IMG/VR virus record: IMGVR_UViG_3300020471_000004
Coordinates: 124,001 to 188,000 of that record
Strand: one strand, 5' to 3'
DNA length: 64,000 bases
Shown: piece by piece, positions 22,196 to 44,736 of the stretch
Layout: each line of letters starts with the position of its first letter
Position numbering within the stretch: the stretch's first letter is position 1
Program-made: the position numbers and the translations under genes
Notes under the pieces: model-generated
Told to the model about the DNA's origin: nothing
Databases searched by the model: none
What the model saw: only the letters and a program-made list of their open reading frames with translations

Positions 22196-22744
22196 ATGTT
22201 ATCAACCTATTCTTTAATAGTGGAAAACCAGGACTTGTTTTCTGCTCAAATTGCACAGGAAGTTTTTGGAGACGTAATAGCAGGTAACAATCCTAATCAA
22301 GTTATAGTAATTACTGATACCTCGCTGCGGAGGAAAGAGCTTACTTCAAACGCGTTTACTTGTTTAGGCGGCTTTGGTTTATTCGCGTCTTTCTTGGATC
22401 TAGACAGGTCTTTTCTAGAGAAAGACGCCGCTAGACCTGCTTTGGTTGCTTGCGCAAACCATGTAGCTAGCGGGTATGACTTTATTAAAGCAGGGCTAAC
22501 AAATTTTTATTTTATAGCTCCTCCTAGATGGACTACTTTGTATGAGCAAAGTAAGCTTGAAGCACACCTTGTGTCCAAGAACTCTATGTTATTGCATTTA
22601 ATGAGCAAGCTTGACCGACCGAGTGTTTTCGATTTTGAAGATATTTCTTTAACAATCGTCTGCAAGGACAAGCGAGTGTACGATATTGTAAAGAAGTGGG
22701 TAGACGATAAAAAGTATATACTATCTTCTAAAGGAGAATTATGA
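22196..22744 (+). CDS. Hypothetical protein
   Basis: 182-aa ORF; ATGA overlap with uvsE. Confidence 0.7.
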   Translation: MLSTYSLIVENQDLFSAQIAQEVFGDVIAGNNPNQVIVITDTSLRRKELTSNAFTCLGGFGLFASFLDLDRSFLEKDAARPALVACANHVASGYDFIKAGLTNFYFIAPPRWTTLYEQSKLEAHLVSKNSMLLHLMSKLDRPSVFDFEDISLTIVCKDKRVYDIVKKWVDDKKYILSSKGEL

Positions 22745-23757
22745 AAATAGGATTTGCATGTAAGTACTTTCATCCTGACCGAACTTTGCCTGCCAAAGCT
22801 CTCAAAGAGGAAGAACAAAAATACAACTTTAAATCTACTACTGCAAAATGGTTAAAGGATAACCCTAAACTTGCCTACAAGCGGTTAGAAGAAATTTGTA
22901 TCTACAACGCCGAATGTGTGGTTCGTTTAGTAGACCTGGTTAGTAGCTGGGCCGTGCCGCTAAGAATGTTACGCATAGGGAGCGATGTACTCCCTATGTA
23001 TACCCACAAAGATTTCAGAACTTTCTACAAAAAAGCCCCCTTTATGCAAGAAGTGGAAAACTTACTTGCAGCCGCAGGTCATCGTGCGAGAGCTGCAGGC
23101 GTCAAACTCTCAATGCACCCTGGTCAATTTTGTGTACTTGCTTCTACCAAGCCTGATGTGATTGCCAATTCAATAGAAGAATTCGAGTACCACGTAGACG
23201 TTATCCGAATGATGGGCTACGCCAAGTCTAAACTTGATTTCAAGTGCAATGTCCATCTTTCAGGTGCAGGTGGTGCCGACAAATTCCTATCTACTTACCA
23301 AAAGCTTTCAACCGAAGCCCGCCGCGTTATCACTTTAGAGAATGACGAGTACACCTCCGACCTAAACGACCTGCTGCCTCTAGCAGACTATGTAGGTATC
23401 GTGCTTGATATTCACCACTACTGGATATACAACCATTCTTTTATCTCCTCACAAGACCCTAGACTTGAAATAATAGAGCAATCTTGGCAAGGCAGGCGTC
23501 CCACTATTCATTACTCGTACAGCCGAGAAGAGCATTTAAAAGGTCTTACTGGCACAAAGCCTGACCTGAATGCTCTTGTATATTCAGGCATCCCTAAGTC
23601 TAAACTAAGAGCACATTCTGATAGTTATCCTAATCCTGCAATGAATAGGTATGCACTGGAGTTTCTGCCTCAATTTGATATTATGTGCGAAGCCAAGAAC
23701 AAGAATGAAGCAAGCACACTCCTATACAAGCAGGCGGTACGCGTAGGTGTACTCTAA
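22741..23757 (+). CDS. uvsE: UV damage endonuclease (UvsE/UVDE)
   Basis: MKIGFAC, RMLRIGSD, LSMHPGQF, EFEYH, ITLENDE, VLDIHH, AHSD and DIMCEAKNK motifs. Confidence 0.92.
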   Translation: MKIGFACKYFHPDRTLPAKALKEEEQKYNFKSTTAKWLKDNPKLAYKRLEEICIYNAECVVRLVDLVSSWAVPLRMLRIGSDVLPMYTHKDFRTFYKKAPFMQEVENLLAAAGHRARAAGVKLSMHPGQFCVLASTKPDVIANSIEEFEYHVDVIRMMGYAKSKLDFKCNVHLSGAGGADKFLSTYQKLSTEARRVITLENDEYTSDLNDLLPLADYVGIVLDIHHYWIYNHSFISSQDPRLEIIEQSWQGRRPTIHYSYSREEHLKGLTGTKPDLNALVYSGIPKSKLRAHSDSYPNPAMNRYALEFLPQFDIMCEAKNKNEASTLLYKQAVRVGVL

Positions 23758-25095: not shown

Positions 25096-25428
25096 ATGGA
25101 CGATATTACTTTAGACGGTCACTCAGCAATTGTTAATGCTATTCTTTCAAGTTGTTCGAGAGAACTTTCTGTTAGCTACGATGACCCAAGCCTTGAAACA
25201 TCGGTTAGCGGCGCCCTTGAAAAGGCGAAACAGGATGACTACGAAGATTATAGCCAACTTGCCCAAGTTATAGTTGAACCAACGTTTACTGAAAACCAAT
25301 CAGTTATCCAAGAAGAATATGCCGAGTATATCGAGAACAATACTGATAACTGGGCAGCCTGGGTACGCCAAACTTTTGGTAACGCTTTAGGTAATCTTGC
25401 CGATGCCGTAAACGAATACGGTTATTAA
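25096..25428 (+). CDS. Small acidic protein, paralog of 23862-24173
   Basis: GGAG RBS; DYEDYSQLAQVIVEP...ENNTDNWAAW...EYGY. Confidence 0.8.
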   Translation: MDDITLDGHSAIVNAILSSCSRELSVSYDDPSLETSVSGALEKAKQDDYEDYSQLAQVIVEPTFTENQSVIQEEYAEYIENNTDNWAAWVRQTFGNALGNLADAVNEYGY

Positions 25429-25468: not shown

Positions 25469-25545
25469 TAACTTTACTAAAGTGGTACAAAACACCATAT
25501 ATACGTACCCCTGTAGTTTTGCTATACTGTATGCATGTTGTGACA
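25469..25545 (+). promoter_or_regulatory. Class-I promoter with ATGTTGTGA leader
   Basis: GGTACAAAA 25484-25492, 30 nt, TGC-TATACT 25523-25528, ATGTTGTGA at 25535. Confidence 0.8.
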
Positions 25546-25594
25546 GACAGCATACAAACTTTCGTTAAACAAACAAACTTAAAGGAAATTCAAA

Positions 25595-27439
25595 ATGGCT
25601 AAAGTTCAAACAAACGAAGCAATGGTTGGTAAGCGCATCAAACTAGAAGATGGCAGCCGTGTTAAAATCCTAGAAGCACAGGCTTCTGGTTACAAACTAT
25701 CTAACGGTGACCGATTACCTGCTCGTAAAGTTGAAAAGCGCGGTCGCAGTTTTATCGAAACTGATCTTACTATGCGTGACCTAGAAGATACAGGTGAAGG
25801 TTATGTTGTTAAGCCTGGTTCTGAGGAAGCATCACCTAAGAAATCAGCCACGCGCAATAAAACAACTGGTAAGAAGAAAACTACCAGCAAGAAAAAAGAA
25901 ACAGGTCGTACAACTCGCAACTCTAAAACCAAAACCAAAACCAAAACCAAGTCTAAGTCAAAAACAAAAGACTCGGAAGAGACGCGTACTAATCGTAAGA
26001 CTAAAACCACGCGTAACAAAAAGAAAGACGATGCCCCGTCTTCTAAAAAGACCGTTTCGCGCCGCCGTACTAAGGCGAAAGAAGAAAAGGTTGAAACTAA
26101 GCCAGCTCGTAACCAAGAAGTCGAGTTGAAAAACAAGTCTCAGATGGAAAAAATTCAAACAGCTATTCGTTTAGCTGTCGGTGAGATCTTAGCGCCTTAC
26201 ACAAACATTGATAGTCAGAGCACTTGTTTGATGGCTAATCCTCCGAAGAGCGCGTTCTCGGTAACGATTGAAGTTAAAACTTCTCTAGTTAAGCCTGAAC
26301 ACCACAGCCTAAGCTATTACAAAGCAATTGCTAAGGAAGCAGGTGCTCGAATCATTACGCTTAAACCTAATATTCAGGCAAAGATTGCAGAACGCCTTGA
26401 ACCTGAAGAGTCTGTACGTGATTCGTTTGTTTTAGAATACGGTGATATTCTTCTTGATGAAGACGGTACTACCAAGCTTGTTTATTCAGGTGTTAACGTA
26501 AGAGAAAATAAGTTTGTTCTGGTTAACATGTCTACCGAGCAAGTTATTGAAATCGGCTTATCAGGTTTTGATAGCCTAGATACTACTGGCGTAAACGTTA
26601 CAAGTCTAGGTATGACTATTGAAGAATACAACCAGGAACTTGAAAACGCTGCCGATGTTGATGATGACGAGTTTGCTATTGATTCCGATGAAGATAAAAC
26701 TCCGCTTGAATCTTTAGACTGGGACAACACTGACCACGAAACTTTAGTTGATTTGCTTTCGGATGTTTACACCGAAGAAGAGCTGATTGCTTTCGCAGAG
26801 CAAATGGACGCGTCCGAAGAAGAGCTTGAAGCACCGATTAGCGAGTTGATTGAAATGATCGTTGCAGCACAAAAAGAAGAGTCGGAAGACTTTGAAGACG
26901 CAGACGAAGAACCTGAGTCGGACGAGCTAGAGCTTGGTGATATTGAAATGGACGAAGATGATCTTGAAACAGAAGATGATCTAGACCTAGAGGACGCCGA
27001 AGACCTAGACGGTATAGAAGAAGTTGTCGAAAACAAACTTTCTATTCGTGAAATGGCCGCAGCGTTGATAGAGTCAGGTGACTATACGCCTAAAGGTTTG
27101 AAGCGCCTGTCTGATGATGAAATCGAGCAGGAGTATCAAGACCTAATCGGTGACCAGGAAGAAGAAGCTGAAGAGCTTCCGTCTCTTGAAGAAATGAAAG
27201 AGACTCTTCTGTCAGACGGTCAAGTAACACCTAAAGGCTTAAAGCGTATGGAAGACGAGGAGATTGAAAGTCTTTACATTGAAGTATACGGTGATGAAGT
27301 CGAAGACGACCAAGACGATGTAGATATGCTTTTCGATGCCGACTCTGTTGAAGACGAAAACGACCTTGACTTAGAAGGCGAAGATGACGATGAAGAAGAC
27401 CTAGATCTAGAAGGCGAGTTAGAGTCTGAATTTGAATAA
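25595..27439 (+). CDS. Polyampholyte protein: basic K/T-rich tract followed by very acidic C-terminal half with two TPKGLKR repeats
   Basis: 614 aa; KKKTTSKKK...KTKTKTKTK tract; D/E-rich tail; repeats at T498 and T545. Confidence 0.85.
   Translation: MAKVQTNEAMVGKRIKLEDGSRVKILEAQASGYKLSNGDRLPARKVEKRGRSFIETDLTMRDLEDTGEGYVVKPGSEEASPKKSATRNKTTGKKKTTSKKKETGRTTRNSKTKTKTKTKSKSKTKDSEETRTNRKTKTTRNKKKDDAPSSKKTVSRRRTKAKEEKVETKPARNQEVELKNKSQMEKIQTAIRLAVGEILAPYTNIDSQSTCLMANPPKSAFSVTIEVKTSLVKPEHHSLSYYKAIAKEAGARIITLKPNIQAKIAERLEPEESVRDSFVLEYGDILLDEDGTTKLVYSGVNVRENKFVLVNMSTEQVIEIGLSGFDSLDTTGVNVTSLGMTIEEYNQELENAADVDDDEFAIDSDEDKTPLESLDWDNTDHETLVDLLSDVYTEEELIAFAEQMDASEEELEAPISELIEMIVAAQKEESEDFEDADEEPESDELELGDIEMDEDDLETEDDLDLEDAEDLDGIEEVVENKLSIREMAAALIESGDYTPKGLKRLSDDEIEQEYQDLIGDQEEEAEELPSLEEMKETLLSDGQVTPKGLKRMEDEEIESLYIEVYGDEVEDDQDDVDMLFDADSVEDENDLDLEGEDDDEEDLDLEGELESEFE
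25925..25948 (+). repeat. (AAAACC)4 in-frame hexamer repeat
   Basis: Encodes KTKTKTKT. Confidence 0.7.
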
Positions 27440-27460
27440 GCCTGTACACCGGAGATAGAT

Positions 27461-27838
27461 ATGTCAGATCTAAAACCGATGTTTATAGGAACGTTTTATA
27501 GTCTTTTAGTCAGGTCTGCAATGTCTAGCGAGGAAGGGTATGTAACAGTACCCGACCTTTCTAAGCAGATAAACATACTACCGAATCGTGGAAACGAGCT
27601 AGGTAAAATTGTTAACCAGACGCTTAAAGAAATTGCTACGTTTGAACACAAGCATAACCGACCTATGTTAACAGCACTGGTCTGCAAACAAGACAAAGCA
27701 AGCGGTTCTTTTTACCCTAGCGATTGGTTCTATGTTTGTGCAGAGCAATTAGGCTACAATGTTCCTAAAACACCAGAAGGGAAGTTACAATTCTGGCGTG
27801 CTGAATTTGAAAAAGTTCACGCATACTGGTCTATATAG
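27461..27838 (+). CDS. Small putative winged-helix DNA-binding protein
   Basis: GGAG RBS; RPMLTALVCKQ...YPSDWF...FWRAEFEKVHAYW pattern recalls small wHTH domains. Confidence 0.55.
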   Translation: MSDLKPMFIGTFYSLLVRSAMSSEEGYVTVPDLSKQINILPNRGNELGKIVNQTLKEIATFEHKHNRPMLTALVCKQDKASGSFYPSDWFYVCAEQLGYNVPKTPEGKLQFWRAEFEKVHAYWSI

Positions 27839-27846
27839 GAGTTACT

Positions 27847-29223
27847 ATGTCTTATACTCGAGTATATGACGATGTGGATATGGATGCAATGCGCTCCTTG
27901 GTTCACGCTAGAATTTTACATCCGTCTGAATCAAAACTTGAGGGTACAGCATTGTCTGTACCTATTACACTGTTTGGTGAAGCTTACAAAAACACCAGGA
28001 CAGTAGAGCTTAGATTAAGCAAAACCTATCTAAGACAACTGGTTAATAAAGCAGCCGAAGGCTATGACCGTGCTACTTGTGAAACAATCAGCTTGTTATA
28101 CAGAGCAGGTTTAGGTTTGCCGAAATCTAAAGAATGTCATTTGCTATGGGACGTACTCCGAAGCGGGTATCAACCTAAAGTAAATGGTAAGATATTTTCA
28201 TATACAAATATGGTTTATATCTTAAAGCAACACTGGAAGATTTTGAGAGTAGAGAACAAAGATCCTAATTGGGTATACTTTAGTCCTCAAAATGATTTTT
28301 TCCGAAATCTTCTGCAACCTACGTTTAGCACTTACGTAAATGATAAGTTTGTAGCCAAGCGTAAACCTTTTGGTGTGTTTGCAAAATACGCAGGTATTGA
28401 TTGTACTCTTGTGTACAGAGCAAATTCACAAACAGGTGAAGGTACGTTTTGGGCAGCCTATGCAAAAGTACAGGACACTTTATTAAATGTCACTGCACAG
28501 GTAGCATGTTGTCCTAATATACCTAAAACTATAATTAACTCTAAGTTGAGTTCGTTTAGTCCTTTCTTTATGGTGAACGGTACATTAACTGTAAAGAATA
28601 GAGCGTTTAGAAAGCTTTCTAAATACTGGCAGCAAAATAATGTACTAGGTCTAATACGTGCAAGTCTAGACCAGGACATTTACTCGTTGGCAGAGTTTGC
28701 AGGAAGGGATTTACCTTCTAAGCATCCTTCGAAAAGCTTTGTAGATCGTTATCGCGGTAAATATCGTAAAGCAACAAAGTTTGTTGATTCGTTTAGAGGC
28801 AAACGTCCTAATCGAACCGATAGCCGTAGGTTAGAAAAGGCTCAGCATCTAATAGATACGTTTAACACCCATGCTATTGTTGTTGACCAAGCTAAAGAGC
28901 ACCGACAGGAATTAAAGCAATACGATATTGTAGATAACCTACAGTTCGTTGCGTATGACTTGTACGGATACTTATCAGAAGATTCTGATAGTTCTAGGTG
29001 CTTGCGAATACGTACCCCTTACGATAAGGTGCATAGCTTTATCAAAGAAATGGGATTCAATACAGCCGTTATGTGCAAACCTTTAAGTAAGCAAAAGGCA
29101 TGTGTTGACCGTGTAACAAGCACTGTACTTCCAGGCTTCATTATGAAAGGCTTGGTTTACAAGCTAGCTGAAAATTCAGCCGGCTCTGATTTAAACTGGG
29201 TTAAAGTTAAACTAGGAGACTAA
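27847..29223 (+). CDS. Sel1-like repeat fused to a degenerate NAD+-dependent DNA ligase adenylation domain
   Basis: KYAGIDCTLVY (motif I), NVTAQVACCPNIPKTI, FMVNGT (III), LQFVAYD (IIIa), KGLVYK (IV); no OB/Zn/HhH/BRCT domains. Confidence 0.55.
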   Translation: MSYTRVYDDVDMDAMRSLVHARILHPSESKLEGTALSVPITLFGEAYKNTRTVELRLSKTYLRQLVNKAAEGYDRATCETISLLYRAGLGLPKSKECHLLWDVLRSGYQPKVNGKIFSYTNMVYILKQHWKILRVENKDPNWVYFSPQNDFFRNLLQPTFSTYVNDKFVAKRKPFGVFAKYAGIDCTLVYRANSQTGEGTFWAAYAKVQDTLLNVTAQVACCPNIPKTIINSKLSSFSPFFMVNGTLTVKNRAFRKLSKYWQQNNVLGLIRASLDQDIYSLAEFAGRDLPSKHPSKSFVDRYRGKYRKATKFVDSFRGKRPNRTDSRRLEKAQHLIDTFNTHAIVVDQAKEHRQELKQYDIVDNLQFVAYDLYGYLSEDSDSSRCLRIRTPYDKVHSFIKEMGFNTAVMCKPLSKQKACVDRVTSTVLPGFIMKGLVYKLAENSAGSDLNWVKVKLGD

Positions 29224-29224
29224 T

Positions 29225-30625
29225 ATGTCTAATCAAGATAACCAGCAAAATACTTCTGAAAACACTAATGTAGTAGAGCCCACTTCTGTTGAAACGGTTG
29301 TAGAGCAAACAACTGAACAGGAAACTGTAAACAATACGCAGAACACAAGTTCTACCGAAACCGAATCACTTACAAAGGATAGCGAAATGAGTAGTGAAAG
29401 CGAAAAGTTACGTCAACGTCAAATCAATGCAGGTATGTCACCTACTGATCAGGCCCGCGAAGAAATGATTAAAGAGCAAGAACAAAGAACAGGCGCTCCT
29501 AATCCTGCACCTCAAGTTGAATCGACTGTGCAAGAGCCGGTTACTGTTTCTCAAACAGAAAACGTTTCTGAAAATGTTTCGTTTGAATCTGAAATGCCTG
29601 TGCAAGAAGTCGAGTTAGCTTCGGCGCGCCCAATGTTTTCTGATTTGTTTGTTCCAGATTCGATGGAACTGTACACTTCTAACATTCGTTTGCACCTGGT
29701 TATTCCTGTTGCGTCTACTAGCATTCTATCTAAGAAGGTTAAGACAGTAGAAGTTGGTGACCAAGAATTCAATATTCGTAACACCTTGGCGCGACCTGTT
29801 AAAGGTAAGCCTGCAGGTCTTATGTTTAATGCGCTAAACGAGCTGCTGTCTACCGCAGACACTTATAACAACCAGCGTTTCTATTACGCAGGTGATGCGC
29901 TTACTCTTGAAAACATGAAAAGCGGACTGTGCGCCCGTCTAACAGACTTTGTTGCAGGTCTTGATTTAGCAGGCGGTCTTTCTAATGAATCTTGGGAAGA
30001 GCAAGTAGGTTTTGCACCTAGCGTTTCAATTACTCCTAGCTTTGACAGCGATGAGCTAATTGTTTCAATGGTTGTTCCGTTTCCTCTACTTTCAATGACG
30101 CCGGATAAACTTGAAACTTCGGCACAGGTAGAAGACTTCATTGTTAAACGTATCGTTGGCGATTCTAACATCAAAGTAGATATAAGTTACGCAATCAACA
30201 CCGTCGATGCAATCATTGACGAATCTGTAAACGAATTGGTGAACGGTCTTGTTGGTGAATCGGATTACGTTCTTGCCACTGACGCGGATCTAATTAGTTT
30301 CTACACTAGCCTGGAAGAAGGCGAAGACGAAGACTTTGATTATAGCGAAGACGAAGGCGAAGATTTTGATTCAGATGAAGATTCGGACGATGACGACCTA
30401 GAATCTGAAGGTGAAGATTCAGACGATGATGACCTTGAGTTAGAAGGTGACGAAGTAGATACAATCGACCTTGGTTATGTGCCGCATAACTCGCTTGCAG
30501 GTCTTGAAGCGCAATTGCGTTATTCTAACATTGGTGACCAATCATTTATCTTGGTTAGCAAATGTGTAAACGAGCTAGAAGATTTAGACTTATCTGGCGC
30601 CGAGCAAGAAGAGTCAGAAGACTAA
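29225..30625 (+). CDS. Acidic protein with disordered N-terminus and D/E-rich tail
   Basis: 466 aa; T/E/Q/S-rich N-terminus; DEDSDDDDLE repeats. Confidence 0.8.
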   Translation: MSNQDNQQNTSENTNVVEPTSVETVVEQTTEQETVNNTQNTSSTETESLTKDSEMSSESEKLRQRQINAGMSPTDQAREEMIKEQEQRTGAPNPAPQVESTVQEPVTVSQTENVSENVSFESEMPVQEVELASARPMFSDLFVPDSMELYTSNIRLHLVIPVASTSILSKKVKTVEVGDQEFNIRNTLARPVKGKPAGLMFNALNELLSTADTYNNQRFYYAGDALTLENMKSGLCARLTDFVAGLDLAGGLSNESWEEQVGFAPSVSITPSFDSDELIVSMVVPFPLLSMTPDKLETSAQVEDFIVKRIVGDSNIKVDISYAINTVDAIIDESVNELVNGLVGESDYVLATDADLISFYTSLEEGEDEDFDYSEDEGEDFDSDEDSDDDDLESEGEDSDDDDLELEGDEVDTIDLGYVPHNSLAGLEAQLRYSNIGDQSFILVSKCVNELEDLDLSGAEQEESED

Positions 30626-30636
30626 AAACTGTAAAC
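30625..30636 (+). promoter_or_regulatory. Class-II motif AAAACTGTAAAC
   Basis: Exact 12-mer overlapping the upstream stop. Confidence 0.55.
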
Positions 30637-30694
30637 TTTATTTGAATATACTAATTAAGTAGTTCAAGATTAATTTTGTATTTGGAGAAACATC

Positions 30695-31219
30695 ATGCGT
30701 AAAACAAAAGCACCGGCAAAGAAAGGCGCTGCTCGTAAAGGTAAGAAAACAGGAACAGCAGTTGCTCGTCCTAGCGGTGCAACACGCAATAGCCGTCTTG
30801 CTAAGTTTGAAGGCAAAATCAACAAGCTTGGTACAGACAAAGTTTCAACCAAAGCTTTAGCGGGAATGAAAGCTTCGGTAGTTGTATCGGCACCTGGTCA
30901 AATCGCTCAGATTATCGGTTACATGGTAGCCGCTGATGAAGACACTGTTACCTTGCGTACTAACAAGAAATCAGGTTCTTCTAAGCCTGTAATCAAAGTT
31001 ATCCCACGCAAACGTATTGCAGCATCTATCGGTGCACCTGGTGACAACTGTATCCTTTGGGTACAAGAGCAAAAAGAAATGTTTGTTCTTAAAGAAACAA
31101 CTGTAAAGGTTGAAGGCAACACTGCTTTCGTTACAGACCTTAAAACAGGCGGTGACGTTATTGAGTTCCCTCTTAACAATCCGCTTGTTGATGTAGCAAT
31201 CGAGTATATGGAAGACTAA
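30695..31219 (+). CDS. Basic-tailed protein with possible Sm/SH3-like beta-barrel
   Basis: GGAG RBS; MRKTKAPAKKGAARKGKK tail; VVVSAPG..IIGYMVAADEDTVTL...VIPRKRIAAS. Confidence 0.75.
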   Translation: MRKTKAPAKKGAARKGKKTGTAVARPSGATRNSRLAKFEGKINKLGTDKVSTKALAGMKASVVVSAPGQIAQIIGYMVAADEDTVTLRTNKKSGSSKPVIKVIPRKRIAASIGAPGDNCILWVQEQKEMFVLKETTVKVEGNTAFVTDLKTGGDVIEFPLNNPLVDVAIEYMED

Positions 31220-31240
31220 GGTCTTCCTTCTCACAAAACA

Positions 31241-31252
31241 AAAACTGTAAAC
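31241..31252 (+). promoter_or_regulatory. Class-II motif AAAACTGTAAAC
   Basis: Exact 12-mer in the intergenic gap. Confidence 0.55.
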
Positions 31253-31303
31253 ATATTTCGTAACATAACGTTAGACTAAAAACACCTTATTAAGGATACA
31301 ATA

Positions 31304-32350
31304 ATGCGTAAATCAAAATCAGCCGCTAAAAAGACTCAAACTAATGCAGCAGTAGAGCTTCTGAAAACCCTTCTTGTCGGTCTTCAAGATGCTGCTAACG
31401 ATGGTGACGAGTCTTGTGCTGCGATTCTAGAACATGCTGGTGTTACCGCTGATTCTCAGGCAGCCTTAGAAGAAGCCGAAGAAGATGAAGATGAAGATGA
31501 CGAAGATGAAGACGTTGACCTCGAAGAGCTTTCTCTTAAAGAGCTGAAAGCACTTTGTAAAGAGCGTGGAATCAAAGTACCTCGCGGTGCTGACGAAGAC
31601 GCCTTAATCGAGCTTCTTGAGGAAGAAGAAGACGAGGAAGACGAAGAAGACGAGGCTGAGGAAGAAGAAGGTCTTGACGAAGAAGAGCGCGAAGAGCTAA
31701 TCGCTGACCTTGTTGCTGCCAAGATCAAAGGTCTTACAAAAGCCAAGTTGAAGAAAATGTCGGACGAGCAACTGCAAGAGCTTGAAGAAGAGCACTTGGG
31801 CGAAGACGAAGACGAAGACGAAGCTGAAGAAGACGGTGATGACTTGGAAGAGCTTTCTCTTAAAGAGCTTAAAGCGCTTTGTAAAGAACGCGGCATTAAA
31901 GTACCACGTGGTGCCGATGAAGAAAAGCTAATCGAGCTTCTTGAAGATGAAGAAGACGAAGAAGAAGGTGACGAAGAAGACGAGGAAGACGGTGACGATG
32001 TTGACCTTGAAGAGCTTTCTCTTAAAGAACTTAAAGCCCTTTGCAAAGAACGTGGTATTAAAGTTCCGCGCGGCGCAGATGAAGAAGATCTAATCGAGCT
32101 TCTTGAAGACGAAGACGAAGAAGAAGACGAAGAAGACGAGGAAGACGAAGACGATATTCCAGATCTTGATTCAATGTCTGACAAAGAGCTTATCGCTTTA
32201 GCCAAAGAGCTTAAACTTGTTAAAGGCGCAAAAGCTAAAAAGCTGAGTGTTGAAGATGCGCTTGAACTTCTTGCTGACCACTACGATATTGAAATCGAAG
32301 CCGAAGACGAAGAAGATGAAGACGAAGACGAGTGGGGCGAAGACGACTAA
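31304..32350 (+). CDS. Extremely acidic protein with three or four HeH (Rho-N/LEM/SAP-like) modules
   Basis: 3x DLEELSLKELKALCKERGIKVPRGADExxLIELLE plus degenerate LDSMSDKELIALAKEL, separated by poly-D/E linkers. Confidence 0.85.
   Translation: MRKSKSAAKKTQTNAAVELLKTLLVGLQDAANDGDESCAAILEHAGVTADSQAALEEAEEDEDEDDEDEDVDLEELSLKELKALCKERGIKVPRGADEDALIELLEEEEDEEDEEDEAEEEEGLDEEEREELIADLVAAKIKGLTKAKLKKMSDEQLQELEEEHLGEDEDEDEAEEDGDDLEELSLKELKALCKERGIKVPRGADEEKLIELLEDEEDEEEGDEEDEEDGDDVDLEELSLKELKALCKERGIKVPRGADEEDLIELLEDEDEEEDEEDEEDEDDIPDLDSMSDKELIALAKELKLVKGAKAKKLSVEDALELLADHYDIEIEAEDEEDEDEDEWGEDD
31517..32107 (+). repeat. Three 105-nt coding direct repeats (31517-31621, 31841-31945, 32003-32107)
   Basis: Near-identical GAAGAGCTTTCTCTTAAAGA cores. 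Confidence 0.9.
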
Positions 32351-32447
32351 TAGTTGATGTCTTTCGAATTTTAATTTTTTAACTTTTACATTGCAGGGAA
32401 GTTGTTAACAGTAAACACTTCCCTTTATAACAAACTGGAGAACAAAA

Positions 32448-32963
32448 ATGGCTAAGACAGTCACTCTTAAAGCTACAAACTTTAATCAAGCGGGAAAGAA
32501 AGTAGAAGCAGTATTGAAAACTGTTGCAAGTACTAGCGCTATCATCGAAGCTCTTGAAAAAGCTGCGGATGCAACCGAAGACAAGAAAGCGACTCGCGCG
32601 TTTACTTCACAAGCTAACAAGCTAACTAAACTTGTTGAGCGCCAAGAAAAAGCAATTGCAGATCTGCAAGGTAAGCTAGTTGTTGAAGGCGAAGAAGCTC
32701 CGGCGAAAGCAAAAGGCAAAGCGAAAGCTGAAAAAGCTCCAGCGAAGGCAAAAGGCAAAGCGAAAGCAAAAGCAAAAGCCGAAAAGCCTGCCGCTAAAAC
32801 CAAAGCAACCAAGGCAAAAGGCAAAGCGAAGGCAAAAGCCGAAAAGCCTGCTGCTAAAACCAAAGCAAAGGGTAAAGCAAAGGCAAAAGCTACTGCAAAA
32901 CCTGCACGTAAACCTCGCAGCAAAAAGACTGCACCAAAAGGTGAATTCGATTTCGAAGCTTAG
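32448..32963 (+). CDS. Histone H1-like K/A-rich DNA-binding protein
   Basis: GGAG RBS; repeats AKAKGKAKAKAEKPAAKTK; ends with acidic FDFEA. Confidence 0.8.
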   Translation: MAKTVTLKATNFNQAGKKVEAVLKTVASTSAIIEALEKAADATEDKKATRAFTSQANKLTKLVERQEKAIADLQGKLVVEGEEAPAKAKGKAKAEKAPAKAKGKAKAKAKAEKPAAKTKATKAKGKAKAKAEKPAAKTKAKGKAKAKATAKPARKPRSKKTAPKGEFDFEA

Positions 32964-33934: not shown

Positions 33935-33943
33935 GGAAGTTTG

Positions 33944-35974
33944 ATGGCTTTACGAAAGAGAAAAACAACTACAGCCAAGACCTCAGCGAAGAAAGGCAAA
34001 AACAAAGCTGGTTATGATGAAGATAGCATTGACGTACAGGAAGGTCTAAAAGGTATTCGCCTTAACCCCGGTATGTATCTTGCTGCTCTGGGTAATCGAA
34101 TGGTGTTTCGAATGGTAAAAGAAGTTGTAGATAATTTCTATGACGAATACGCCGCTGGTCGAAACACAGGGGGTGAGGTAATCTACGACCCCAAGACTAA
34201 CGCCTGTATTGTAGCTGACTATGCTCAAGGTATTCCTGTCGGATTAAAACAGACTGAACACGAAGGTAAGGTAAGTACACTTACTCTTATTCTTACAAAA
34301 GTTCACGCAGGTGGTAAGTTTAATGACAAGGCTTACAAAACCTCAAGTGGTACGCACGGTGTTGGTGTTTCTGCGGTAAACGCTGTTTCAAAAGTTCTTG
34401 AAGTATGGACACACCGTGATGGAAGTTGGTACTATCAAAAGTTTAACACTGGTATCCCTGCTGCTAAAGTCAAGAAACTTTCTAAGACGCCTACCGAATT
34501 CAAAAAGATGGGCCTCGCAGAAAAGCGTTTTGACAAGTATGGTACTATTATTCGATTTGTTCCTGACCAGACGGTTGTGTCCGAAGACGCTGCTCGTGGT
34601 AGTCGTAAAACAGAAGACAAACTTACCAAAGCGATTCTGGAAGAAAGCACTACAGAGCGTTGGTTAAAAACGCTTGCCTTATTGAACAAAAATTTTAAGA
34701 TCACATTCAATCATATTGGTAGTGAACCTAAAGTTTTCTTAAACAAGAAAGGTCTAGATTTCCTTATTAGTGAACGCATCAAAGAAAACGAGCTAGGTGC
34801 AGTTATCAAAAAACCTTTTTCGTATTCAGACGGCGAACTTGATTGTGTTGTTACTTGGACTGACCAGCCTGATGACGTACACTTTACATCGTTTGTTAAC
34901 TCGTCTGCTACTTTATCTCATGGTACTCACGTTGAAGGTTTCCGTTCGGCGTTACAAAAAGCAATTAAGCCTCACTTAACAGAGCGCGATAAAAAAGCCA
35001 AGTTCACGGTACATGACCTAATGATTGGTGCGTGTGGTATTCTAAACTTCCGAATGAACTCTGCTATATATGATTCACAGGTCAAAGATAAGTTGGTATC
35101 TAAAGTATCAAAAATCATTGACGATAAACTTAGCGAACCCTTATTGCTGTGGTTTAAAGAAAATCCTCGCGTTGCTAAAAACATAATCAAGAAGGCTACT
35201 ACTGCAAACAGTGCCCGTGAATCTTTGAAAAAGGTAATGCGTTCACTAACAGAAGTTAGAAAAGGCAGTCGTGGTAAGTTGCCTGAAAACCTTACTGAGG
35301 CCCCTAACGTTAAGCCTGATAAAAGAGAAATCTATATAGTAGAAGGTGACTCGGCAGGCGGTACAGCTAAAGACGCCCGTAATGATAACCAAGAGATATT
35401 AAGATTATCTGGTAAGCCTTTGAATGCGCTTAAAGCAGGACTGGACAAATTGCTTACCAGCAAGGCAATAGTTAATATTATTATATCGCTGGGTATTGAC
35501 CCTAGTTCTCTTGATGTTAACTCAGAGAATCCTAAGTTTAGTGTTGATAAGTTGCGTTGTCGTGACGTTATACTTTTAAGTGATCCTGACCCTGATGGTT
35601 CACACATCAATACTCTTATTCTTAGTCTATTCTTCCGACTTATGCCAGACCTTATTAAGCAAGGTCGTTTGTATGTTATTGAAGCCAAGCTGTACAGTGC
35701 TTTGTATAAAGGTAAACTTTACACAGGCGATACGTTTGAAGAATGTTATTCTCAAATGCCCCAGACACCTGATGCTAAACGTAGCGTTATACGCATCAAA
35801 GGTTGGGGAGAAATTAACGCAGATATGATGGACCCTATTGCGTTTGATCCAGAGTTACGCACTATACGCCGTATTACTTGGGTCGATGACCCGGATAAAA
35901 TACAACACTTCCGAAACATTGCTGCTGAATCAAGCGCAAGCCGACGAGAACTTCTAGGTCTCAAGGAAGCTTAA
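33944..35974 (+). CDS. gyrB: Type IIA DNA topoisomerase subunit B (GyrB/ParE-like)
   Basis: GHKL motifs EVVDN, DYAQGIP, HAGGKF, GTHGVGVSAVNA; TOPRIM VEGDSAGG, GKPLN, DPDPDGSHI; RIKGWGE. Confidence 0.95.
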   Translation: MALRKRKTTTAKTSAKKGKNKAGYDEDSIDVQEGLKGIRLNPGMYLAALGNRMVFRMVKEVVDNFYDEYAAGRNTGGEVIYDPKTNACIVADYAQGIPVGLKQTEHEGKVSTLTLILTKVHAGGKFNDKAYKTSSGTHGVGVSAVNAVSKVLEVWTHRDGSWYYQKFNTGIPAAKVKKLSKTPTEFKKMGLAEKRFDKYGTIIRFVPDQTVVSEDAARGSRKTEDKLTKAILEESTTERWLKTLALLNKNFKITFNHIGSEPKVFLNKKGLDFLISERIKENELGAVIKKPFSYSDGELDCVVTWTDQPDDVHFTSFVNSSATLSHGTHVEGFRSALQKAIKPHLTERDKKAKFTVHDLMIGACGILNFRMNSAIYDSQVKDKLVSKVSKIIDDKLSEPLLLWFKENPRVAKNIIKKATTANSARESLKKVMRSLTEVRKGSRGKLPENLTEAPNVKPDKREIYIVEGDSAGGTAKDARNDNQEILRLSGKPLNALKAGLDKLLTSKAIVNIIISLGIDPSSLDVNSENPKFSVDKLRCRDVILLSDPDPDGSHINTLILSLFFRLMPDLIKQGRLYVIEAKLYSALYKGKLYTGDTFEECYSQMPQTPDAKRSVIRIKGWGEINADMMDPIAFDPELRTIRRITWVDDPDKIQHFRNIAAESSASRRELLGLKEA

Positions 35975-37064: not shown

Positions 37065-38672
37065 ATGAGAAAGAGAAAAGCTTCCTCAGATTCAGAAGAT
37101 ACCAAACGCCGTCTGGTGCGCAGACGAAAAACAGGCGTTACAAAATCTAAAACAAAAAAGAAATCTTTAGGTAAGCTTGCACAGAAAGCCGCTAAGCCTG
37201 ATTACAACACAAACATCGAAGGTGCAGATGAAATTACCTTGGATGATTTTGCTGGTGCAAGTCTTACACACTACGGATCATATGTTGTAGAAGAACGTGC
37301 TGTACCTGATTACCGCGATGGTCTTAAACCTGTTCACAGATACATACTTTGGGCAATGCATGACCTAGGTATCAATTCTAGATCAGGTTACAAAAAGTCA
37401 GCTCGTACTATTGGTGATGTTCTTGGTAAGTATCACCCGCATGGTGACCAGTCTGCTTACGGTGCTATGTCTACTCTTGTTAACTACAAGTTGAATCCTC
37501 AACTTGTTCAAGGTCAAGGTAACTGGGGTACTCCTGTAGACCCTCATGCTGCAATGCGTTATACCGAGGCCCGATTAAGTGCGTTCAGTGATATTTTCTT
37601 GCTAGATAAGCACTACTTGAAAACTGTTCCTAAAATCGATAACTTTGACCAAACTTTAAAGGTACCGCTGTATTTGCCTGCTACGTTACCTACACTTATG
37701 ATAACAGGTAGCTCTGGAATCGGTTTTGGTATAGCTTCATCGAATCCTCCGTTTGACGTAGACGGTGTGTACAAGATGGCTGTAAGTAGCTTGAAGGCGT
37801 TTGCTGCTAAAAAGAAAGTTACTTATAAAACCTGCATGAAGAACCTGACTATTGATTATGGTTTCGGGTGTACGCAGGTTAGTGGTGATGATGAAATGGA
37901 AGACCTGTTCAAGACAGGTAAAGCTTCTATTAAATTTGTACCTGAAATAAAAGTTGACCCCAAGACCAAGACTATCGAGATAGTTTCATTCGCGCCTGGC
38001 TTTAGAAGTGTAAGTGGTATACAGAAAAAGCTAGACAAGATTGCAGGCTGGGACGGTGTTAGCAGAGCTGGTGACAACTCAGGTGCTAAAAACAAAAAAG
38101 CAGGAAAGCTAGGTGCATATTATTATGTAACTGCTTCGCGTGGAACATCTGAGCAGGCTTTGTATGACTTGGCTGACCGAGTATACAAGGAAGTTACAGG
38201 CTCTGAGAGTTACGATTTAGGATTTACTGTTCGTAACCATGAAGATCGTAACCAGTTTATAAAAAGCGGCTACCCTGCTTACTTTAATAACTGGGCCAAG
38301 TATCGATTCATACTTGAGCACAAAGCTATTGCTATACATATCGAAGAGCGAAAGGCAGCTATTGCCTTGCTTGAATTAAAAGTGTTGGCAGTAGACAAGC
38401 GTGATATAATTATGCAGGTTCTTAAATCTAAAACAAAGGACTTAGATGCTACGCTTGCTAAGAAACTAAGAATACCTCTTGAAGATGCCAAGACTATTCT
38501 GAACCTACAGACTAGACGACTAGCAGCTTTAGAGAAACCTCAACTTCTGGCAGAGATTAAAGACCTCAAGAGTCAGATACGAGAGTTACAAAAGGATGAT
38601 GCAAATCCTTTGAAACGAATCTTGCGAATCACCAAGGAACAGTATGATACGTACCGCAAGCGTATCAAATAA
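37065..38672 (+). CDS. gyrA: Type IIA DNA topoisomerase subunit A (GyrA/ParC-like), lacking the C-terminal beta-pinwheel
   Basis: RAVPDYRDGLKPVHR, KKSARTIGDVLGKYHPHGD, AAMRYTEARL (catalytic Y166); ends at 535 aa. Confidence 0.95.
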   Translation: MRKRKASSDSEDTKRRLVRRRKTGVTKSKTKKKSLGKLAQKAAKPDYNTNIEGADEITLDDFAGASLTHYGSYVVEERAVPDYRDGLKPVHRYILWAMHDLGINSRSGYKKSARTIGDVLGKYHPHGDQSAYGAMSTLVNYKLNPQLVQGQGNWGTPVDPHAAMRYTEARLSAFSDIFLLDKHYLKTVPKIDNFDQTLKVPLYLPATLPTLMITGSSGIGFGIASSNPPFDVDGVYKMAVSSLKAFAAKKKVTYKTCMKNLTIDYGFGCTQVSGDDEMEDLFKTGKASIKFVPEIKVDPKTKTIEIVSFAPGFRSVSGIQKKLDKIAGWDGVSRAGDNSGAKNKKAGKLGAYYYVTASRGTSEQALYDLADRVYKEVTGSESYDLGFTVRNHEDRNQFIKSGYPAYFNNWAKYRFILEHKAIAIHIEERKAAIALLELKVLAVDKRDIIMQVLKSKTKDLDATLAKKLRIPLEDAKTILNLQTRRLAALEKPQLLAEIKDLKSQIRELQKDDANPLKRILRITKEQYDTYRKRIK

Positions 38673-38694
38673 CCTGGATGGTTTGTAAGTGCGT

Positions 38695-38802
38695 GTTGCT
38701 GTAAAATGCGCTTCTAGATTCGGTAGCTGAAAATAGTAATTTAACTAGACTACGCTACCGAATCTGGTACAGCAACTATTTGCATTTTTGGGAATGTTCC
38801 CA
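38695..38802 (+). ncRNA. Long interrupted stem-loop (putative ncRNA or processing signal)
   Basis: GTTGCTGTA/TACAGCAAC enclosing AGATTCGGTAGC/GCTACCGAATCT; downstream TGGGA/TCCCA hairpin. Confidence 0.4.
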
Positions 38803-38836
38803 TTTAAGCCTTTTTGGCTTTTAAGGATATAAAAAT

Positions 38837-40195
38837 ATGACAAAGCAATTGGCAACAAGCCTAGACTCTATCGAGTCTGCGGCCCTTTCTATATTTACCT
38901 CTTTGAAAAGATCTGGTTCTGCTTTAGACCGTAACCAGTTTTGTAAGAACCTTGATAATCTTACAACGCTTGTGGATTCGGCTTTAGGAATCAAAGACAG
39001 ATCTAAACCTCGTGGCACCAAAGCGACACTTACTTATATCCGTAACTCTGTGGACTCTGTTTCACAAGGGATAAAAGATCGCGACCTCAATGTAACCGAA
39101 ACTCGTAGCATATTCTTCACCAAGATAATGCCTCGTGTTAAGACTATAAATGACATTTCCTCTAAAATAAAGAACCGTGCTAGCGAGCAGGAGTTAGTTG
39201 AAAAAACAGCTAACGAAGCCTGGTCTACAGCAACTAAAGGTTCTAAAGGCAGTCAACTTGCAGAAGCTCTTGAGTATGCAAAAGAGGCTACCGAAGCTAG
39301 ACAAGAAGCTCTTGAAAAAGCTTCCCAAGAGATTGAGCTGTCAGCTATGGCTGCCGGTTCACAAAAACTCCGAGATTATTCGGTTCACTCCAAAAAATTC
39401 CTTTCACCTAAAGGCAAAGAATACAAACGTATACTTGAAACAGGGTCTTGTTTACCTGTTCAATCACCTGTGTTTGTATCCTTTTCTCATGGTCGTTTGC
39501 GTGAAACTTCTGTACTGGACGAATTAGGTTTCAAGTACAGTGTTGTTAGTTCACGGGATTCTGACCATGCTGATGTAGCTCTCGTCTTAGAAGATCAAAT
39601 TCTATTACAATTCAGTAAACGTAATGCCCTTATTTACTTTGAAAATCTGGTTGAACAGATGCGTAAAAACATTCGGTCTTCGGATGATAGCAAAACCTGT
39701 AGGCAAAAAAGAAAGCAACTTAAAAGCCTTGAACAAAAGCAGGAGCGTTTATCTAGCCAGTTAAGAAAAGAAAAATTAAACAAAAGCACAGGTGCGACCA
39801 TCCAAAGTCTATTAGACAGAACGCTTGTGCAAGTCGAAGAGACCCAGGCAGATATTGCCAAACTAGAGGAGAATTTAAAACGTAAACGGCACGAAATAAC
39901 GGTACTCAAAAGGGAAGTGTTTCGTAAGTCTACATTGTTAAACAGTGAAGGAAAGCCTAAAGTATTGTTGAAACCTAAAGCTTACGAGCAGTATCTAGGA
40001 TACATACTTAATCAGTTTCACGAAAAAGGTCATCACTATTCAATGCTTTCTAGTCAGTTTGAAACGCATTCGGATATTGCTGATATACAGATAGCGTGGC
40101 TGGTTCACAGTGACGTAGCTGATGTGGTTCGTTCATTATACGGCGACACCAACATAGTTACTAACTGGGGATTTCCTTGGAAACAACATGTCTAA
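38837..40195 (+). CDS. Coiled-coil hypothetical protein
   Basis: 452 aa; heptad stretches; AAGGA RBS. Confidence 0.8.
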   Translation: MTKQLATSLDSIESAALSIFTSLKRSGSALDRNQFCKNLDNLTTLVDSALGIKDRSKPRGTKATLTYIRNSVDSVSQGIKDRDLNVTETRSIFFTKIMPRVKTINDISSKIKNRASEQELVEKTANEAWSTATKGSKGSQLAEALEYAKEATEARQEALEKASQEIELSAMAAGSQKLRDYSVHSKKFLSPKGKEYKRILETGSCLPVQSPVFVSFSHGRLRETSVLDELGFKYSVVSSRDSDHADVALVLEDQILLQFSKRNALIYFENLVEQMRKNIRSSDDSKTCRQKRKQLKSLEQKQERLSSQLRKEKLNKSTGATIQSLLDRTLVQVEETQADIAKLEENLKRKRHEITVLKREVFRKSTLLNSEGKPKVLLKPKAYEQYLGYILNQFHEKGHHYSMLSSQFETHSDIADIQIAWLVHSDVADVVRSLYGDTNIVTNWGFPWKQHV

Positions 40196-43203: not shown

Positions 43204-44736
43204 ATGGAAATAAACTCTATTGATGCAGAATTGCAGTTTTTAAAGACTGTAACAAATACTAAAATACCAAAGCAGAAGCGTTTAGAGTTTTTAGGTAAAG
43301 TAAACATACATACTTTTCACCATGAATATACGCAACAGGCGTACAAGCGAATACTTAGCTTGGTTCAGAACCGAAATCATTTACTTGATTGGGGTGAGTT
43401 AAAAACTGACCAAGCTATGGATCGCGATGCTCGTGACCTGTTTGAAGATACAGAAGTACGCTCTGCTAAAGGTGCAAAAAGCGTTCAAAAGCTTATTGAA
43501 GACCTAGACGAATTTCGTAAACGCAGACAGGTATTCGAGTTAATATCTGAAAGTGCTTCAAGTTTTGACCAAGACAAAATCGATATTGATCAAGTACTGG
43601 ATAACATCCGTAATAATATCGGAAAGATTGAAGCAAACACTATCGAAGAAGAGACTATGTGGACGTTCGGTGTTGATGATAACGCCGACGAAATCATAGA
43701 CCGTATTATCAATAACCCTAGTGAAGAGCTGTACAAAACAGGCTTCAAGGAATATGATGAACGTAACGGCGGTCTTCCTACTACTGGTGTAATGATTATG
43801 GCAGCTACCACCTCTGGTGGTAAGTCTGCCGTTTCAATGAACTTGGAAAAGAACTTGGCAGTCCTTAACCCTAACATGAGTGCTACTAAAGTTACTCTAG
43901 AAATGAGTGAGGAACAGGAAGGTAAGCGTGTTGCTTCTATGGTATCAGGTGTACCCCTAGCTAAATTCAAACGTAACCAGTTGTCTGATCGTGAAATCAA
44001 AAAGATTAAAAACGATATGGATGCCTGGCGTAAACAGCTTAGAGCGAATAACAGCCGATTCAGTTATGTGTCTGGTAAAAAGTCTCGTACTATAGACCAG
44101 TTACTTGCTTGGCTTATTCCTTATGCTTTCAAAGTAATAATCATTGACTATATATCTTTGTTAGAAGGTGTTGATGATGATAACCAATGGCGTATGCTTA
44201 GTGCTATTGCTCGTAAGTGTAAGGTATTCGGCGCAGAGCACAATTGCTTGGTAATACTGCTTGCACAGCTGGACACAGAGTCTAGTAAGTTACGTTACTC
44301 TAAAGGTATTAAAGAACACGCGGACGTAATGTGGAAATGGAACTATGCAGATGAAGAGGTTCGTGCAACGCATATTATCAATATTCAAATCGACAAAGCC
44401 CGTGACGGAGAGCTGTTCGACATGCCTGTGCATGAAGACTTTGCCGTTATGCGGATCTCTGACGAAATCGATGACGAATCGAAACAAGCCTATGAAGAGC
44501 TTAAAAATAGTCGCAACAAGCGCAAGAAGAAAAAAGATTCCCAAGACGGGGACAGCGGGCGAGACGAGCGTTCTGAAAGAGGCAATAAGCGCCGTAAAAA
44601 TAGAGCGGAAGATGATTCCGATTCCAGACGTTCTAAGCGAAGATCAAAAAATAGAGATAGAGAAGAATCTGAAACAAGCTCTAGATCTTCACGTAGAAAG
44701 AAATCTTCGTCAAACGATGACTTGATATTAGGTTAA
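43204..44736 (+). CDS. dnaB: DnaB-like replicative helicase with charged C-terminal tail
   Basis: Walker A ATTSGGKS, TLEM, Walker B IIIDYI, LAQL, RYSKGIKEHAD, IDKARDG. Confidence 0.9.
   Translation: MEINSIDAELQFLKTVTNTKIPKQKRLEFLGKVNIHTFHHEYTQQAYKRILSLVQNRNHLLDWGELKTDQAMDRDARDLFEDTEVRSAKGAKSVQKLIEDLDEFRKRRQVFELISESASSFDQDKIDIDQVLDNIRNNIGKIEANTIEEETMWTFGVDDNADEIIDRIINNPSEELYKTGFKEYDERNGGLPTTGVMIMAATTSGGKSAVSMNLEKNLAVLNPNMSATKVTLEMSEEQEGKRVASMVSGVPLAKFKRNQLSDREIKKIKNDMDAWRKQLRANNSRFSYVSGKKSRTIDQLLAWLIPYAFKVIIIDYISLLEGVDDDNQWRMLSAIARKCKVFGAEHNCLVILLAQLDTESSKLRYSKGIKEHADVMWKWNYADEEVRATHIINIQIDKARDGELFDMPVHEDFAVMRISDEIDDESKQAYEELKNSRNKRKKKKDSQDGDSGRDERSERGNKRRKNRAEDDSDSRRSKRRSKNRDREESETSSRSSRRKKSSSNDDLILG

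Follow-up and report, generated by a model that had tools for sequence, protein, structure and literature searches.

The window analysed here, a 64,000-nt stretch of viral DNA (positions 124,001 to 188,000 of the 232.7-kb IMG/VR record IMGVR_UViG_3300020471_000004, with a G+C content of about 40% and almost all genes on one strand), contains at 27847..29223 (+) an intact open reading frame (ORF) that starts with ATG and encodes a basic protein of 458 amino acids (aa; net charge +25, pI 9.6). We conclude with high confidence that this protein, hereafter the pseudo-ligase, has the fold of the adenylation domain of the NAD+-dependent DNA ligase LigA and is homologous to it, and the residues lost from its active site suggest that it very probably has no ligase or adenylyltransferase activity. 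Overall, the evidence leans toward a non-catalytic descendant of the LigA adenylation domain, used as an adaptor that binds DNA or a partner. The initial annotation of this gene had described a LigA adenylation domain with an eroded active site and a Sel1-like element attached to it, i.e. a pseudo-ligase, and the fold searches, the hhalign comparison and the residue counts across the family all bear out this core reading. Of the functions suggested there, none is established and some are weakened by the results below.

A structural model of the pseudo-ligase was obtained with AlphaFold2 from a family alignment built from phmmer relatives (pLDDT 87.7, pTM 0.83). A fold search of the HHpred/Foldseek type had been proposed in the initial annotation as a check, with the absence of a ligase nucleotidyltransferase fold as the outcome that would count against it. 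That outcome did not occur: in the Foldseek search against the PDB, LigA adenylation domains led the list (3pn1, E 1.7e-7). An aligner independent of Foldseek placed E. coli LigA at the top (Z 16.1 over 215 residues, 3.2 Å), and also matched S. aureus LigA (Z 14.8), a subunit of the heterodimeric ligase of phage PR1 (Z 13.7; Foldseek E 1.5e-6), ATP-dependent ligases (about 11), and capping enzymes and RNA ligases (Z 8-9.5); the top 39 rows belonged mostly to the ligase/capping-enzyme nucleotidyltransferase superfamily. Since the stated background best Z of this aligner is 7-8, the match to LigA lies far beyond chance. AFDB clusters, ESM Atlas and BFVD likewise gave LigA adenylation domains, which were the top match in five libraries, and PF01653 was carried by all ten nearest sets in ESM Atlas. 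The part of the pseudo-ligase that matches the core fold starts at aa ~54-135.

The motif register was established by aligning the family in hhalign with 77 LigA N-termini, with E. coli LigA as the numbering reference (probability 88.5%, E 2.7e-6). The equivalences obtained for motifs I, III, IIIa, IV and V and for the V-T..I-P segment (Table 1) coincide column for column with the motif map drawn up in the initial annotation. On the fold and profile statistics, a chance resemblance to the LigA motifs was rejected.

For the residue counts, the family was enlarged to 25 members with the homologs from cultured phages, and compared with the same 77 LigA sequences. In true LigAs, K115, D117, G118, R136, R171, E173 and R200 are each present in 77/77, D285 and G286 in 74/77, and K314 in 72/77. 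In the family, the position of the nucleophile K115 is Lys in only 7/25 members and R, S, P, Q, V, N, C or D in the others. Within the clade of the window protein (40-47% identity) it switches between K and R, and because of this alternation K180 does not appear to be under selection as a catalytic residue; the self-adenylation at K180 for which an assay had been suggested is therefore unlikely. The motif I Asp (D117) is retained in 4/25 members and is Ala in the window protein, and neither the motif III Glu (E173; K in 11 members, T, V, S, I, Y or R in the rest) nor the motif IV Asp (D285) is found in any of the 25. The positions equivalent to R136 and R171 are variable. Judged by these substitutions, the active site is dead across the whole family. 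What is conserved, apart from the invariant residues and those of the Sel1-like hairpin given below, comprises G245, D277, D371, position 439 in motif IV (R or K in 22/25) and the near-invariant W451 of motif V, where K453 is Lys in about two thirds of the members. A Pfam search with the window protein did not match PF01653 even at E ≤ 1 (the best hit, at E 0.11, was irrelevant), whereas the phage's own LigA matched it with 88 bits.

The same counts bear on the possibility of a repurposed enzyme, in which the ligase fold would be kept and residues other than those of LigA would carry out another nucleotidyl-transfer or phosphoryl reaction, with DNA, RNA or protein as substrate, the candidates being K246 (in most distant members), R/K439, K453, D185, D277 and D371. 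The family has long been under selection, and polar residues on the strands of the pocket are conserved among very divergent members, both of which speak for such an enzyme. However, only G88, Y190 and F367 reach 25/25, no Lys position is invariant anywhere in the 25-member alignment, the three acidic residues conserved in LigA motifs I, III and IV are all lost, and K246 is replaced by T, V or S in the clade of the window protein. We consider this explanation improbable.

Outside the core fold, the architecture of LigA is not retained. No Pfam match to Nlig-Ia was found, and the hhalign alignment of the N-terminus to domain Ia had negligible confidence. The protein stops 5 residues past motif V and therefore has no OB, Zn-finger, HhH or BRCT domain, as had been noted at the outset; Pfam matched none of these domains in the pseudo-ligase or in the adjacent ORFs. 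Two elements have been gained. The family profile matches solved Sel1-repeat proteins at residues ~51-106 (6onw_A, E 2.4e-7 for the whole chain), with Sel1/TPR-type proteins as the top 7/7 matches and single-repeat E values of 0.07-0.6; the model places helices at 59-71, 75-87 and 95-105, and the hairpin holds the most conserved residues of the family (R56, Y85, G88, P92 and W101). The Sel1-like repeat proposed in the initial annotation is supported at the profile level and as one unit, but the single sequence does not reach the Pfam Sel1 threshold. There is no tandem array: only one unit matches, and the rest of the N-terminus consists of a beta-hairpin and short helices. The second gain is a helical segment between motifs III and IIIa with long hairpin helices at 294-315 and 323-357, a net charge of +11 in the window protein and the conserved D277. 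An insertion of roughly 90 aa had been described here; the extra segment does exist, but it measures ~110 aa, with a net gain over LigA of roughly 70-85 aa.

Another explanation is a sensor or sponge for a nucleotide or NAD-derived ligand, in which the gutted adenylate pocket would bind without reacting and would, for example, blunt NAD-depleting or nucleotide-signalling defences of the host. The m3G-cap-binding domain of snurportin is a non-catalytic ligand binder of the same fold (Z 8.6), solo phage Nlig-Ia domains are predicted NAD+ sensors (PMC9503650), and the motif IIIa aromatic and the motif IV basic residue persist in the family. Against this, the pseudo-ligase lacks the NMN-binding domain Ia, which LigA needs for NAD+ recognition, and the equivalents of the LigA adenine contacts (E113, L116, Y225 and V288) vary. 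The NAD sensor listed among the options of the initial annotation is therefore disfavoured. Moreover, PADLOC gave no match, there is no defence-like context around the gene, and the operon context is one of DNA metabolism. A sensor or sponge thus seems to us quite improbable, if only a little more so than new chemistry, and membership of a defence or anti-defence system was rejected for want of a PADLOC match.

The pseudo-ligase family is rare. Searched exhaustively with phmmer, 1.84 billion representatives yielded 21 relatives, nearly all full length (420-460 aa); PHROGs matched two families of unknown function, and PADLOC and NCBIfam gave no match. The closest GenBank relative is phage NCTB (257.9 kb), whose orthologue, 'hypothetical protein BN7874_075', shares 46% identity. 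NCTB has been placed in the 'Lupandier' group of jumbo phages together with the Pseudomonas phages PaBG and Lu11 and with Dickeya and Erwinia phages (PMC7412058). A tblastn search of 50,697 phage records with four family members as queries found NCTB alone, and pattern scans of viral contigs with the family alignments yielded nothing usable. A hidden Markov model (HMM) of the family, in contrast, detected one copy each in PaBG (PaBG_00128), Lu11, Dickeya phage JA29 (JA29_305), Erwinia phage Y3 (Y3_319) and NCTB, with E values of 1e-23 to 1e-165; as tblastn had missed the first four, the HMM search was necessary. The family is therefore present in 6/6 Lupandier-group jumbo phages tested, the window genome included, where it is also single-copy. 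Every one of the five named homologs is annotated 'hypothetical protein', and in BFVD the JA13 and PaBG proteins are labelled 'Uncharacterized'. The phage of the window has been sampled repeatedly: near-identical copies of window positions 25500-31300 occur in metagenomes of marine and coral-reef origin from several independent studies. In one coral-reef contig, the stretch carries 13 substitutions and a 3-nt deletion (at 27156, within the gene of the 614-aa protein) relative to the window; of the substitutions, just one affects the pseudo-ligase gene (27862 G>A, V6I).

Each of the six genomes encodes exactly one full-length LigA (an open frame of 650-681 aa), and none has an ATP-dependent ligase. 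In the record studied here, the genuine NAD+-dependent ligase lies outside the window, at record positions ~37130-39142 (-), encodes 671 aa with an intact K-L-D-G, and is ~113 kb from the pseudo-ligase gene. The search for an intact ligase that had been suggested as a check was thus positive in this genome and in all five relatives, which shows that the pseudo-ligase comes on top of a working ligase and excludes that it substitutes for a missing one. Among metagenomic relatives of the phage LigA, many are ~1000-1160-aa fusions of LigA with a PolX-type polymerase (PF14716, PF14792, PF14791), some of them named 'NAD-dependent DNA ligase/DNA polymerase/3'-5' exonuclease PolX'. The constant presence of a genuine LigA, with which the pseudo-ligase shares its core fold, would suit a decoy or regulator that binds host or phage LigA, its nick substrate or its clamp partner and inhibits or redirects ligation. 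This explanation has very little probability: the gene is not linked to the phage ligA, and the protein is without the OB, HhH and BRCT surfaces by which LigA engages DNA and partners.

The pseudo-ligase gene belongs to a conserved operon that is surrounded by genes for replication and repair (Table 1). From marine metagenomic relatives to cultured phages, the gene order is UvdE, a large hyper-acidic protein, a protein of ~125-140 aa, the pseudo-ligase, a fast-evolving protein of 330-1005 aa and a basic protein of ~170-200 aa, followed by further genes and then GyrB; some clades add one small gene beside that of the ~125-140-aa protein, and the operon always lies between UvdE and GyrB. In every locus examined, the stop codon of the pseudo-ligase gene overlaps the start of the next gene or is at most 22 nt from it, a tight junction that suggests translational coupling of the two genes. 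The downstream protein diverges fast: that of the window had no match in Pfam, PHROG, PADLOC, NCBIfam or Atlas, a word-indexed search gave only near-identical relatives, and the partners in distant clades have no detectable homology. It was considered as a possible source of the OB/HhH half that the pseudo-ligase lacks. No terminator-like site was found on the + strand inside the operon (25.6-31.2 kb), but the promoter and terminator scan as a whole was uninformative, with fewer promoter-like sites than in shuffled sequences.

Table 1. Features of the pseudo-ligase gene and its neighbourhood. Positions are those of the window; residue numbers are those of the encoded protein.
Feature	Position	Strand	E. 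coli LigA equivalent	Basis or remark
Whole pseudo-ligase ORF, LigA-derived	27847..29223	+		ORF, AlphaFold2 model, fold searches, hhalign, charge
N-terminal ~53 aa, short helices and beta-hairpin in the place of LigA domain Ia	27847..28005	+		DSSP of the model
Single Sel1-like helical hairpin, aa ~56-106	28012..28164	+		Profile matches to solved Sel1-repeat proteins, conservation
Nucleotidyltransferase (adenylation) fold, first half, aa ~135-250, with motif I and III remnants	28249..28596	+		Structure alignment, hhalign
Motif I remnant, K180-Y-A-G183	28384..28395	+	K115-L-D-G118	hhalign, residue counts
V-T..I-P segment, N214-V-T-A-Q218...I-P			D144-I-T-S-N148...I-P	hhalign
Motif III remnant, G245-T246	28579..28584	+	G172-E173	hhalign, residue counts
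Helical segment, aa ~251-360, between motifs III and IIIa	28597..28926	+		AlphaFold2 model, hhalign, conservation
Nucleotidyltransferase fold, second half, aa 361-458, with motif IIIa (F367..Y370, D371), IV and V remnants	28927..29220	+		Structure alignment, hhalign
Motif IIIa remnant, F367..Y370			F222..Y225	hhalign
Motif IV remnant, K434-G-L-V-Y-K439	29146..29163	+	D285-G286..K290 (K434-G435..K439)	hhalign, residue counts
Motif V remnant, W451-V-K453-V-K455	29197..29211	+	K314 (K453)	hhalign, residue counts
UvdE	22741-23757			Replication/repair gene
Paralogous small proteins, 117 and 110 aa	23820-24173 and 25096-25428	+		Similar C-terminal halves ('NTDNWA..W/Y...G')
Upstream operon gene, 614 aa, net charge -82	25595..27439	+		~70 conserved aa at the N-terminus, followed by a Lys-rich linker and acidic repeats
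Conserved upstream neighbour, 125 aa	27461..27838	+		Core 'HNRPMLTALVVK...PG..FF'
Downstream gene, 466 aa, net charge -78	29225..30625	+		Start abuts the pseudo-ligase stop codon
Conserved operon gene, 174 aa, basic (+13)	30695..31219	+		Lys-rich N-terminus
SAP protein, 348 aa, net charge -109	31304-32350	+		Pfam SAP, 37.3 bits, above threshold
171-aa protein, net charge +29	32448-32963	+		Lys/Ala-rich, histone-H1-like tail
GyrB	33941-35974			Replication/repair gene
GyrA / Topo IV-A type subunit	37065-38672			Replication/repair gene
DnaB	43204-44736			Replication/repair gene
5'-3' exonuclease	53525-54577			Replication/repair gene

The net charges of the successive proteins alternate along 25595-32963 (-82, +1, +25 for the pseudo-ligase, -78, +13, -109 and +29), and this alternation, retained in outline by NCTB-like relatives, might be a sign of DNA-mimic or chaperone-like pairs. 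The model of the 125-aa neighbour (pLDDT 83.7) shows a generic winged-helix-like fold, an assignment that is only a lead because its best Z is 6.3; an MGMT/ATL-like fold, considered from the core 'RPMLTALVV', was rejected, as only the generic winged helix was found and MGMT reached a Z of ~5. The 348-aa protein carries at least three SAP units ('LSLKELKALCKERGIKVPRGADEE', a DNA-binding helix-extension-helix) with poly-acidic linkers between them, an arrangement that is unusual for a phage. The NCTB homologue of the 171-aa protein, BN7874_079, is labelled 'Large-conductance mechanosensitive channel', apparently a misannotation due to low complexity. The paralogues of 117 and 110 aa have the same NCTB gene as their match (E 1e-24 and 5e-12) and represent a local duplication. 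Long antisense ORFs that encode almost nothing but Ser, at 31456-32205 (-) and 26767-27036 (-) (249 and 89 aa), mirror the GAA/GAT acidic repeats of the + strand and can almost certainly be dismissed as genes.

Runs of hyper-acidic and basic proteins recall the internal or ejected proteins of phages, and the pseudo-ligase could accordingly be imagined as a structural or packaged virion protein, e.g. an internal DNA-associated one, together with these neighbours; the gene sits, however, in the replication/repair block and not in the structural block, and gp128 is not mentioned among 14 abundant PaBG virion proteins (PMC7412058, in a shallow survey), so that we give this possibility hardly any weight.

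The remaining explanation, and the one we favour, is that of the ligase-derived adaptor. The adenylation domain of a phage ligase would have been duplicated in an ancestor of the Lupandier lineage, and the resulting pseudo-ligase would no longer adenylate or seal. Its basic ligase-derived body, with the helical arm, may hold DNA (a nick, an end or a duplex) or the hyper-acidic neighbour proteins. Sel1-like hairpins are typically protein-binding elements, and that of the pseudo-ligase would bind a protein partner, most plausibly the product of the translationally coupled downstream gene. The adaptor role on DNA or a partner is a tentative proposal. It is consistent with the DNA-associated neighbours (UvdE, GyrB, GyrA, DnaB, the 5'-3' exonuclease, the SAP-domain protein and the winged-helix-like protein) and with the placement of a basic pseudo-ligase between hyper-acidic proteins. 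A complex prediction with the pseudo-ligase, the 125-aa upstream protein and the core of the 466-aa protein scored 0.28 against a mark of 0.32 and counts neither way.

Several observations weigh against this picture. The basic charge is weak evidence of DNA binding because LigA N-termini are also basic (+15 for that of the phage LigA; median +7 for the LigA set vs +19 for the family). K180 is kept in the window protein and in 3/5 mid-distance relatives, and the conserved D185, Q218, D371, R/K439 and K453 on the strands of the pocket could mean a ligand pocket or new chemistry. Finally, short identical contigs from two metatranscriptomic libraries fall on the operon, one of them across the junction of the pseudo-ligase and the downstream gene (29177-29381), but expression is only hinted at by these, because DNA carry-over is possible in RNA libraries.

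A wider form of the adaptor proposal, which we regard as unlikely although worth stating, makes the pseudo-ligase one component of a hitherto unrecognised, lineage-wide 'chromatin-like' or DNA-handling protein set. Hyper-acidic proteins (net -78 to -109, one of them with several SAP domains) would alternate in this set with basic ones, namely the pseudo-ligase, the Lys-rich 174-aa protein and the Lys/Ala-rich histone-H1-like protein; the ligase-derived body would recognise DNA discontinuities or duplex, and the Sel1-like hairpin would tether the acidic partners. If true, this would be a new way to organise or protect a phage genome of 230-280 kb during replication.

Irrespective of mechanism, for which our arguments are inferential, the family is a ligase-fold pseudoenzyme that is LigA-derived, phage-encoded and conserved in its lineage. 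It gives a fold and a name to a gene that carries the label 'hypothetical' throughout the Lupandier-group jumbo phages tested, marks a conserved operon of unknown function among replication genes, and would offer a clean example of a large phage that duplicated and exapted a core replication enzyme. Cultured, tractable phages belong to this group: PaBG (host P. aeruginosa PAO1), Lu11 and those of Dickeya and Erwinia. Poxvirus processivity factors and snurportin provide known examples of dead ligase-fold domains, and we found none described as derived from a bacterial-type NAD+ ligase or as phage-borne; two broad surveys of jumbo-phage and viral NAD+ systems described no inactive LigA nucleotidyltransferase module.

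Compared with the LigA adenylation domain itself (PF01653; E. coli LigA, PDB 4glx and 2owo), the pseudo-ligase has the same core fold, motifs I, III, IIIa, IV and V follow one another in the same order and register, and several structural residues are common to both (the Y190 strand, G245, F367 and the 'V-T..I-P' segment). Unlike LigA, it has no conserved catalytic Lys, motif I Asp, motif III Glu, motif IV Asp, R136 or R171, and no domain Ia, OB, Zn finger, HhH or BRCT, and it adds the Sel1-like module and the ~110-aa helical segment; of the catalytic and architectural features of LigA, only the core fold is present. The split heterodimeric NAD+ ligase of phage PR1 (PDB 9hu3 and 9i5i) also has a stand-alone adenylation-type subunit of similar size. 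The PR1 protein, by its PDB title, is a working ligase on nicked DNA with a second subunit, whereas the catalytic residues of the pseudo-ligase are gone, Pfam detected no OB or HhH partner among its operon neighbours, and a complete one-piece LigA is encoded elsewhere in the genome.

The stand-alone phage Nlig-Ia proteins (Iyer et al. 2022, PMC9503650) are likewise lone pieces of LigA that have been proposed to be non-catalytic. They represent, however, the complementary piece: they consist of domain Ia alone, keep the NAD-binding residues and occur mostly in phages without a ligase, whereas the pseudo-ligase is the nucleotidyltransferase part without Ia, has lost the catalytic residues and occurs in phages with LigA. 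Sel1-like repeat (SLR) proteins (PDB 6onw and 6ur7) have a consensus (L-Y..G.G.P.....W) that the segment at aa ~56-106 matches at the profile level, though not at the Pfam Sel1 threshold with the single sequence, and the pseudo-ligase has one unit beside an enzyme-derived fold rather than a tandem array. The m3G-cap-binding domain of snurportin-1 (PDB 1xk5) is a nucleotidyltransferase fold of the ligase/capping superfamily in which catalysis has been lost and only binding kept; it belongs to the capping-enzyme branch, binds the cap dinucleotide and is eukaryotic. In its mode of action the pseudo-ligase would come closest to this domain or to the poxvirus domain below, two ligase/capping folds of independent origin that were retained for binding.

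The middle domain of the vaccinia A20 / monkeypox A22 processivity factor has been called 'an inactive DNA ligase' within the polymerase holoenzyme; it is a dead viral ligase-fold domain that belongs to the DNA replication machinery without acting as an enzyme (PMC11142717). Its structural match to the pseudo-ligase (8wpf_B, Z 7.8) is far weaker than that of LigA, it keeps the OB subdomain, its flanking domains bind the glycosylase and the polymerase, and the two proteins have independent origins in different virus realms. Like A20/A22, the pseudo-ligase combines a ligase fold with the absence of catalytic residues. Its gene lies among replication genes, and physical membership of a replication complex is conceivable for the protein. 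The A20 middle domain is a direct functional precedent for the proposed adaptor.

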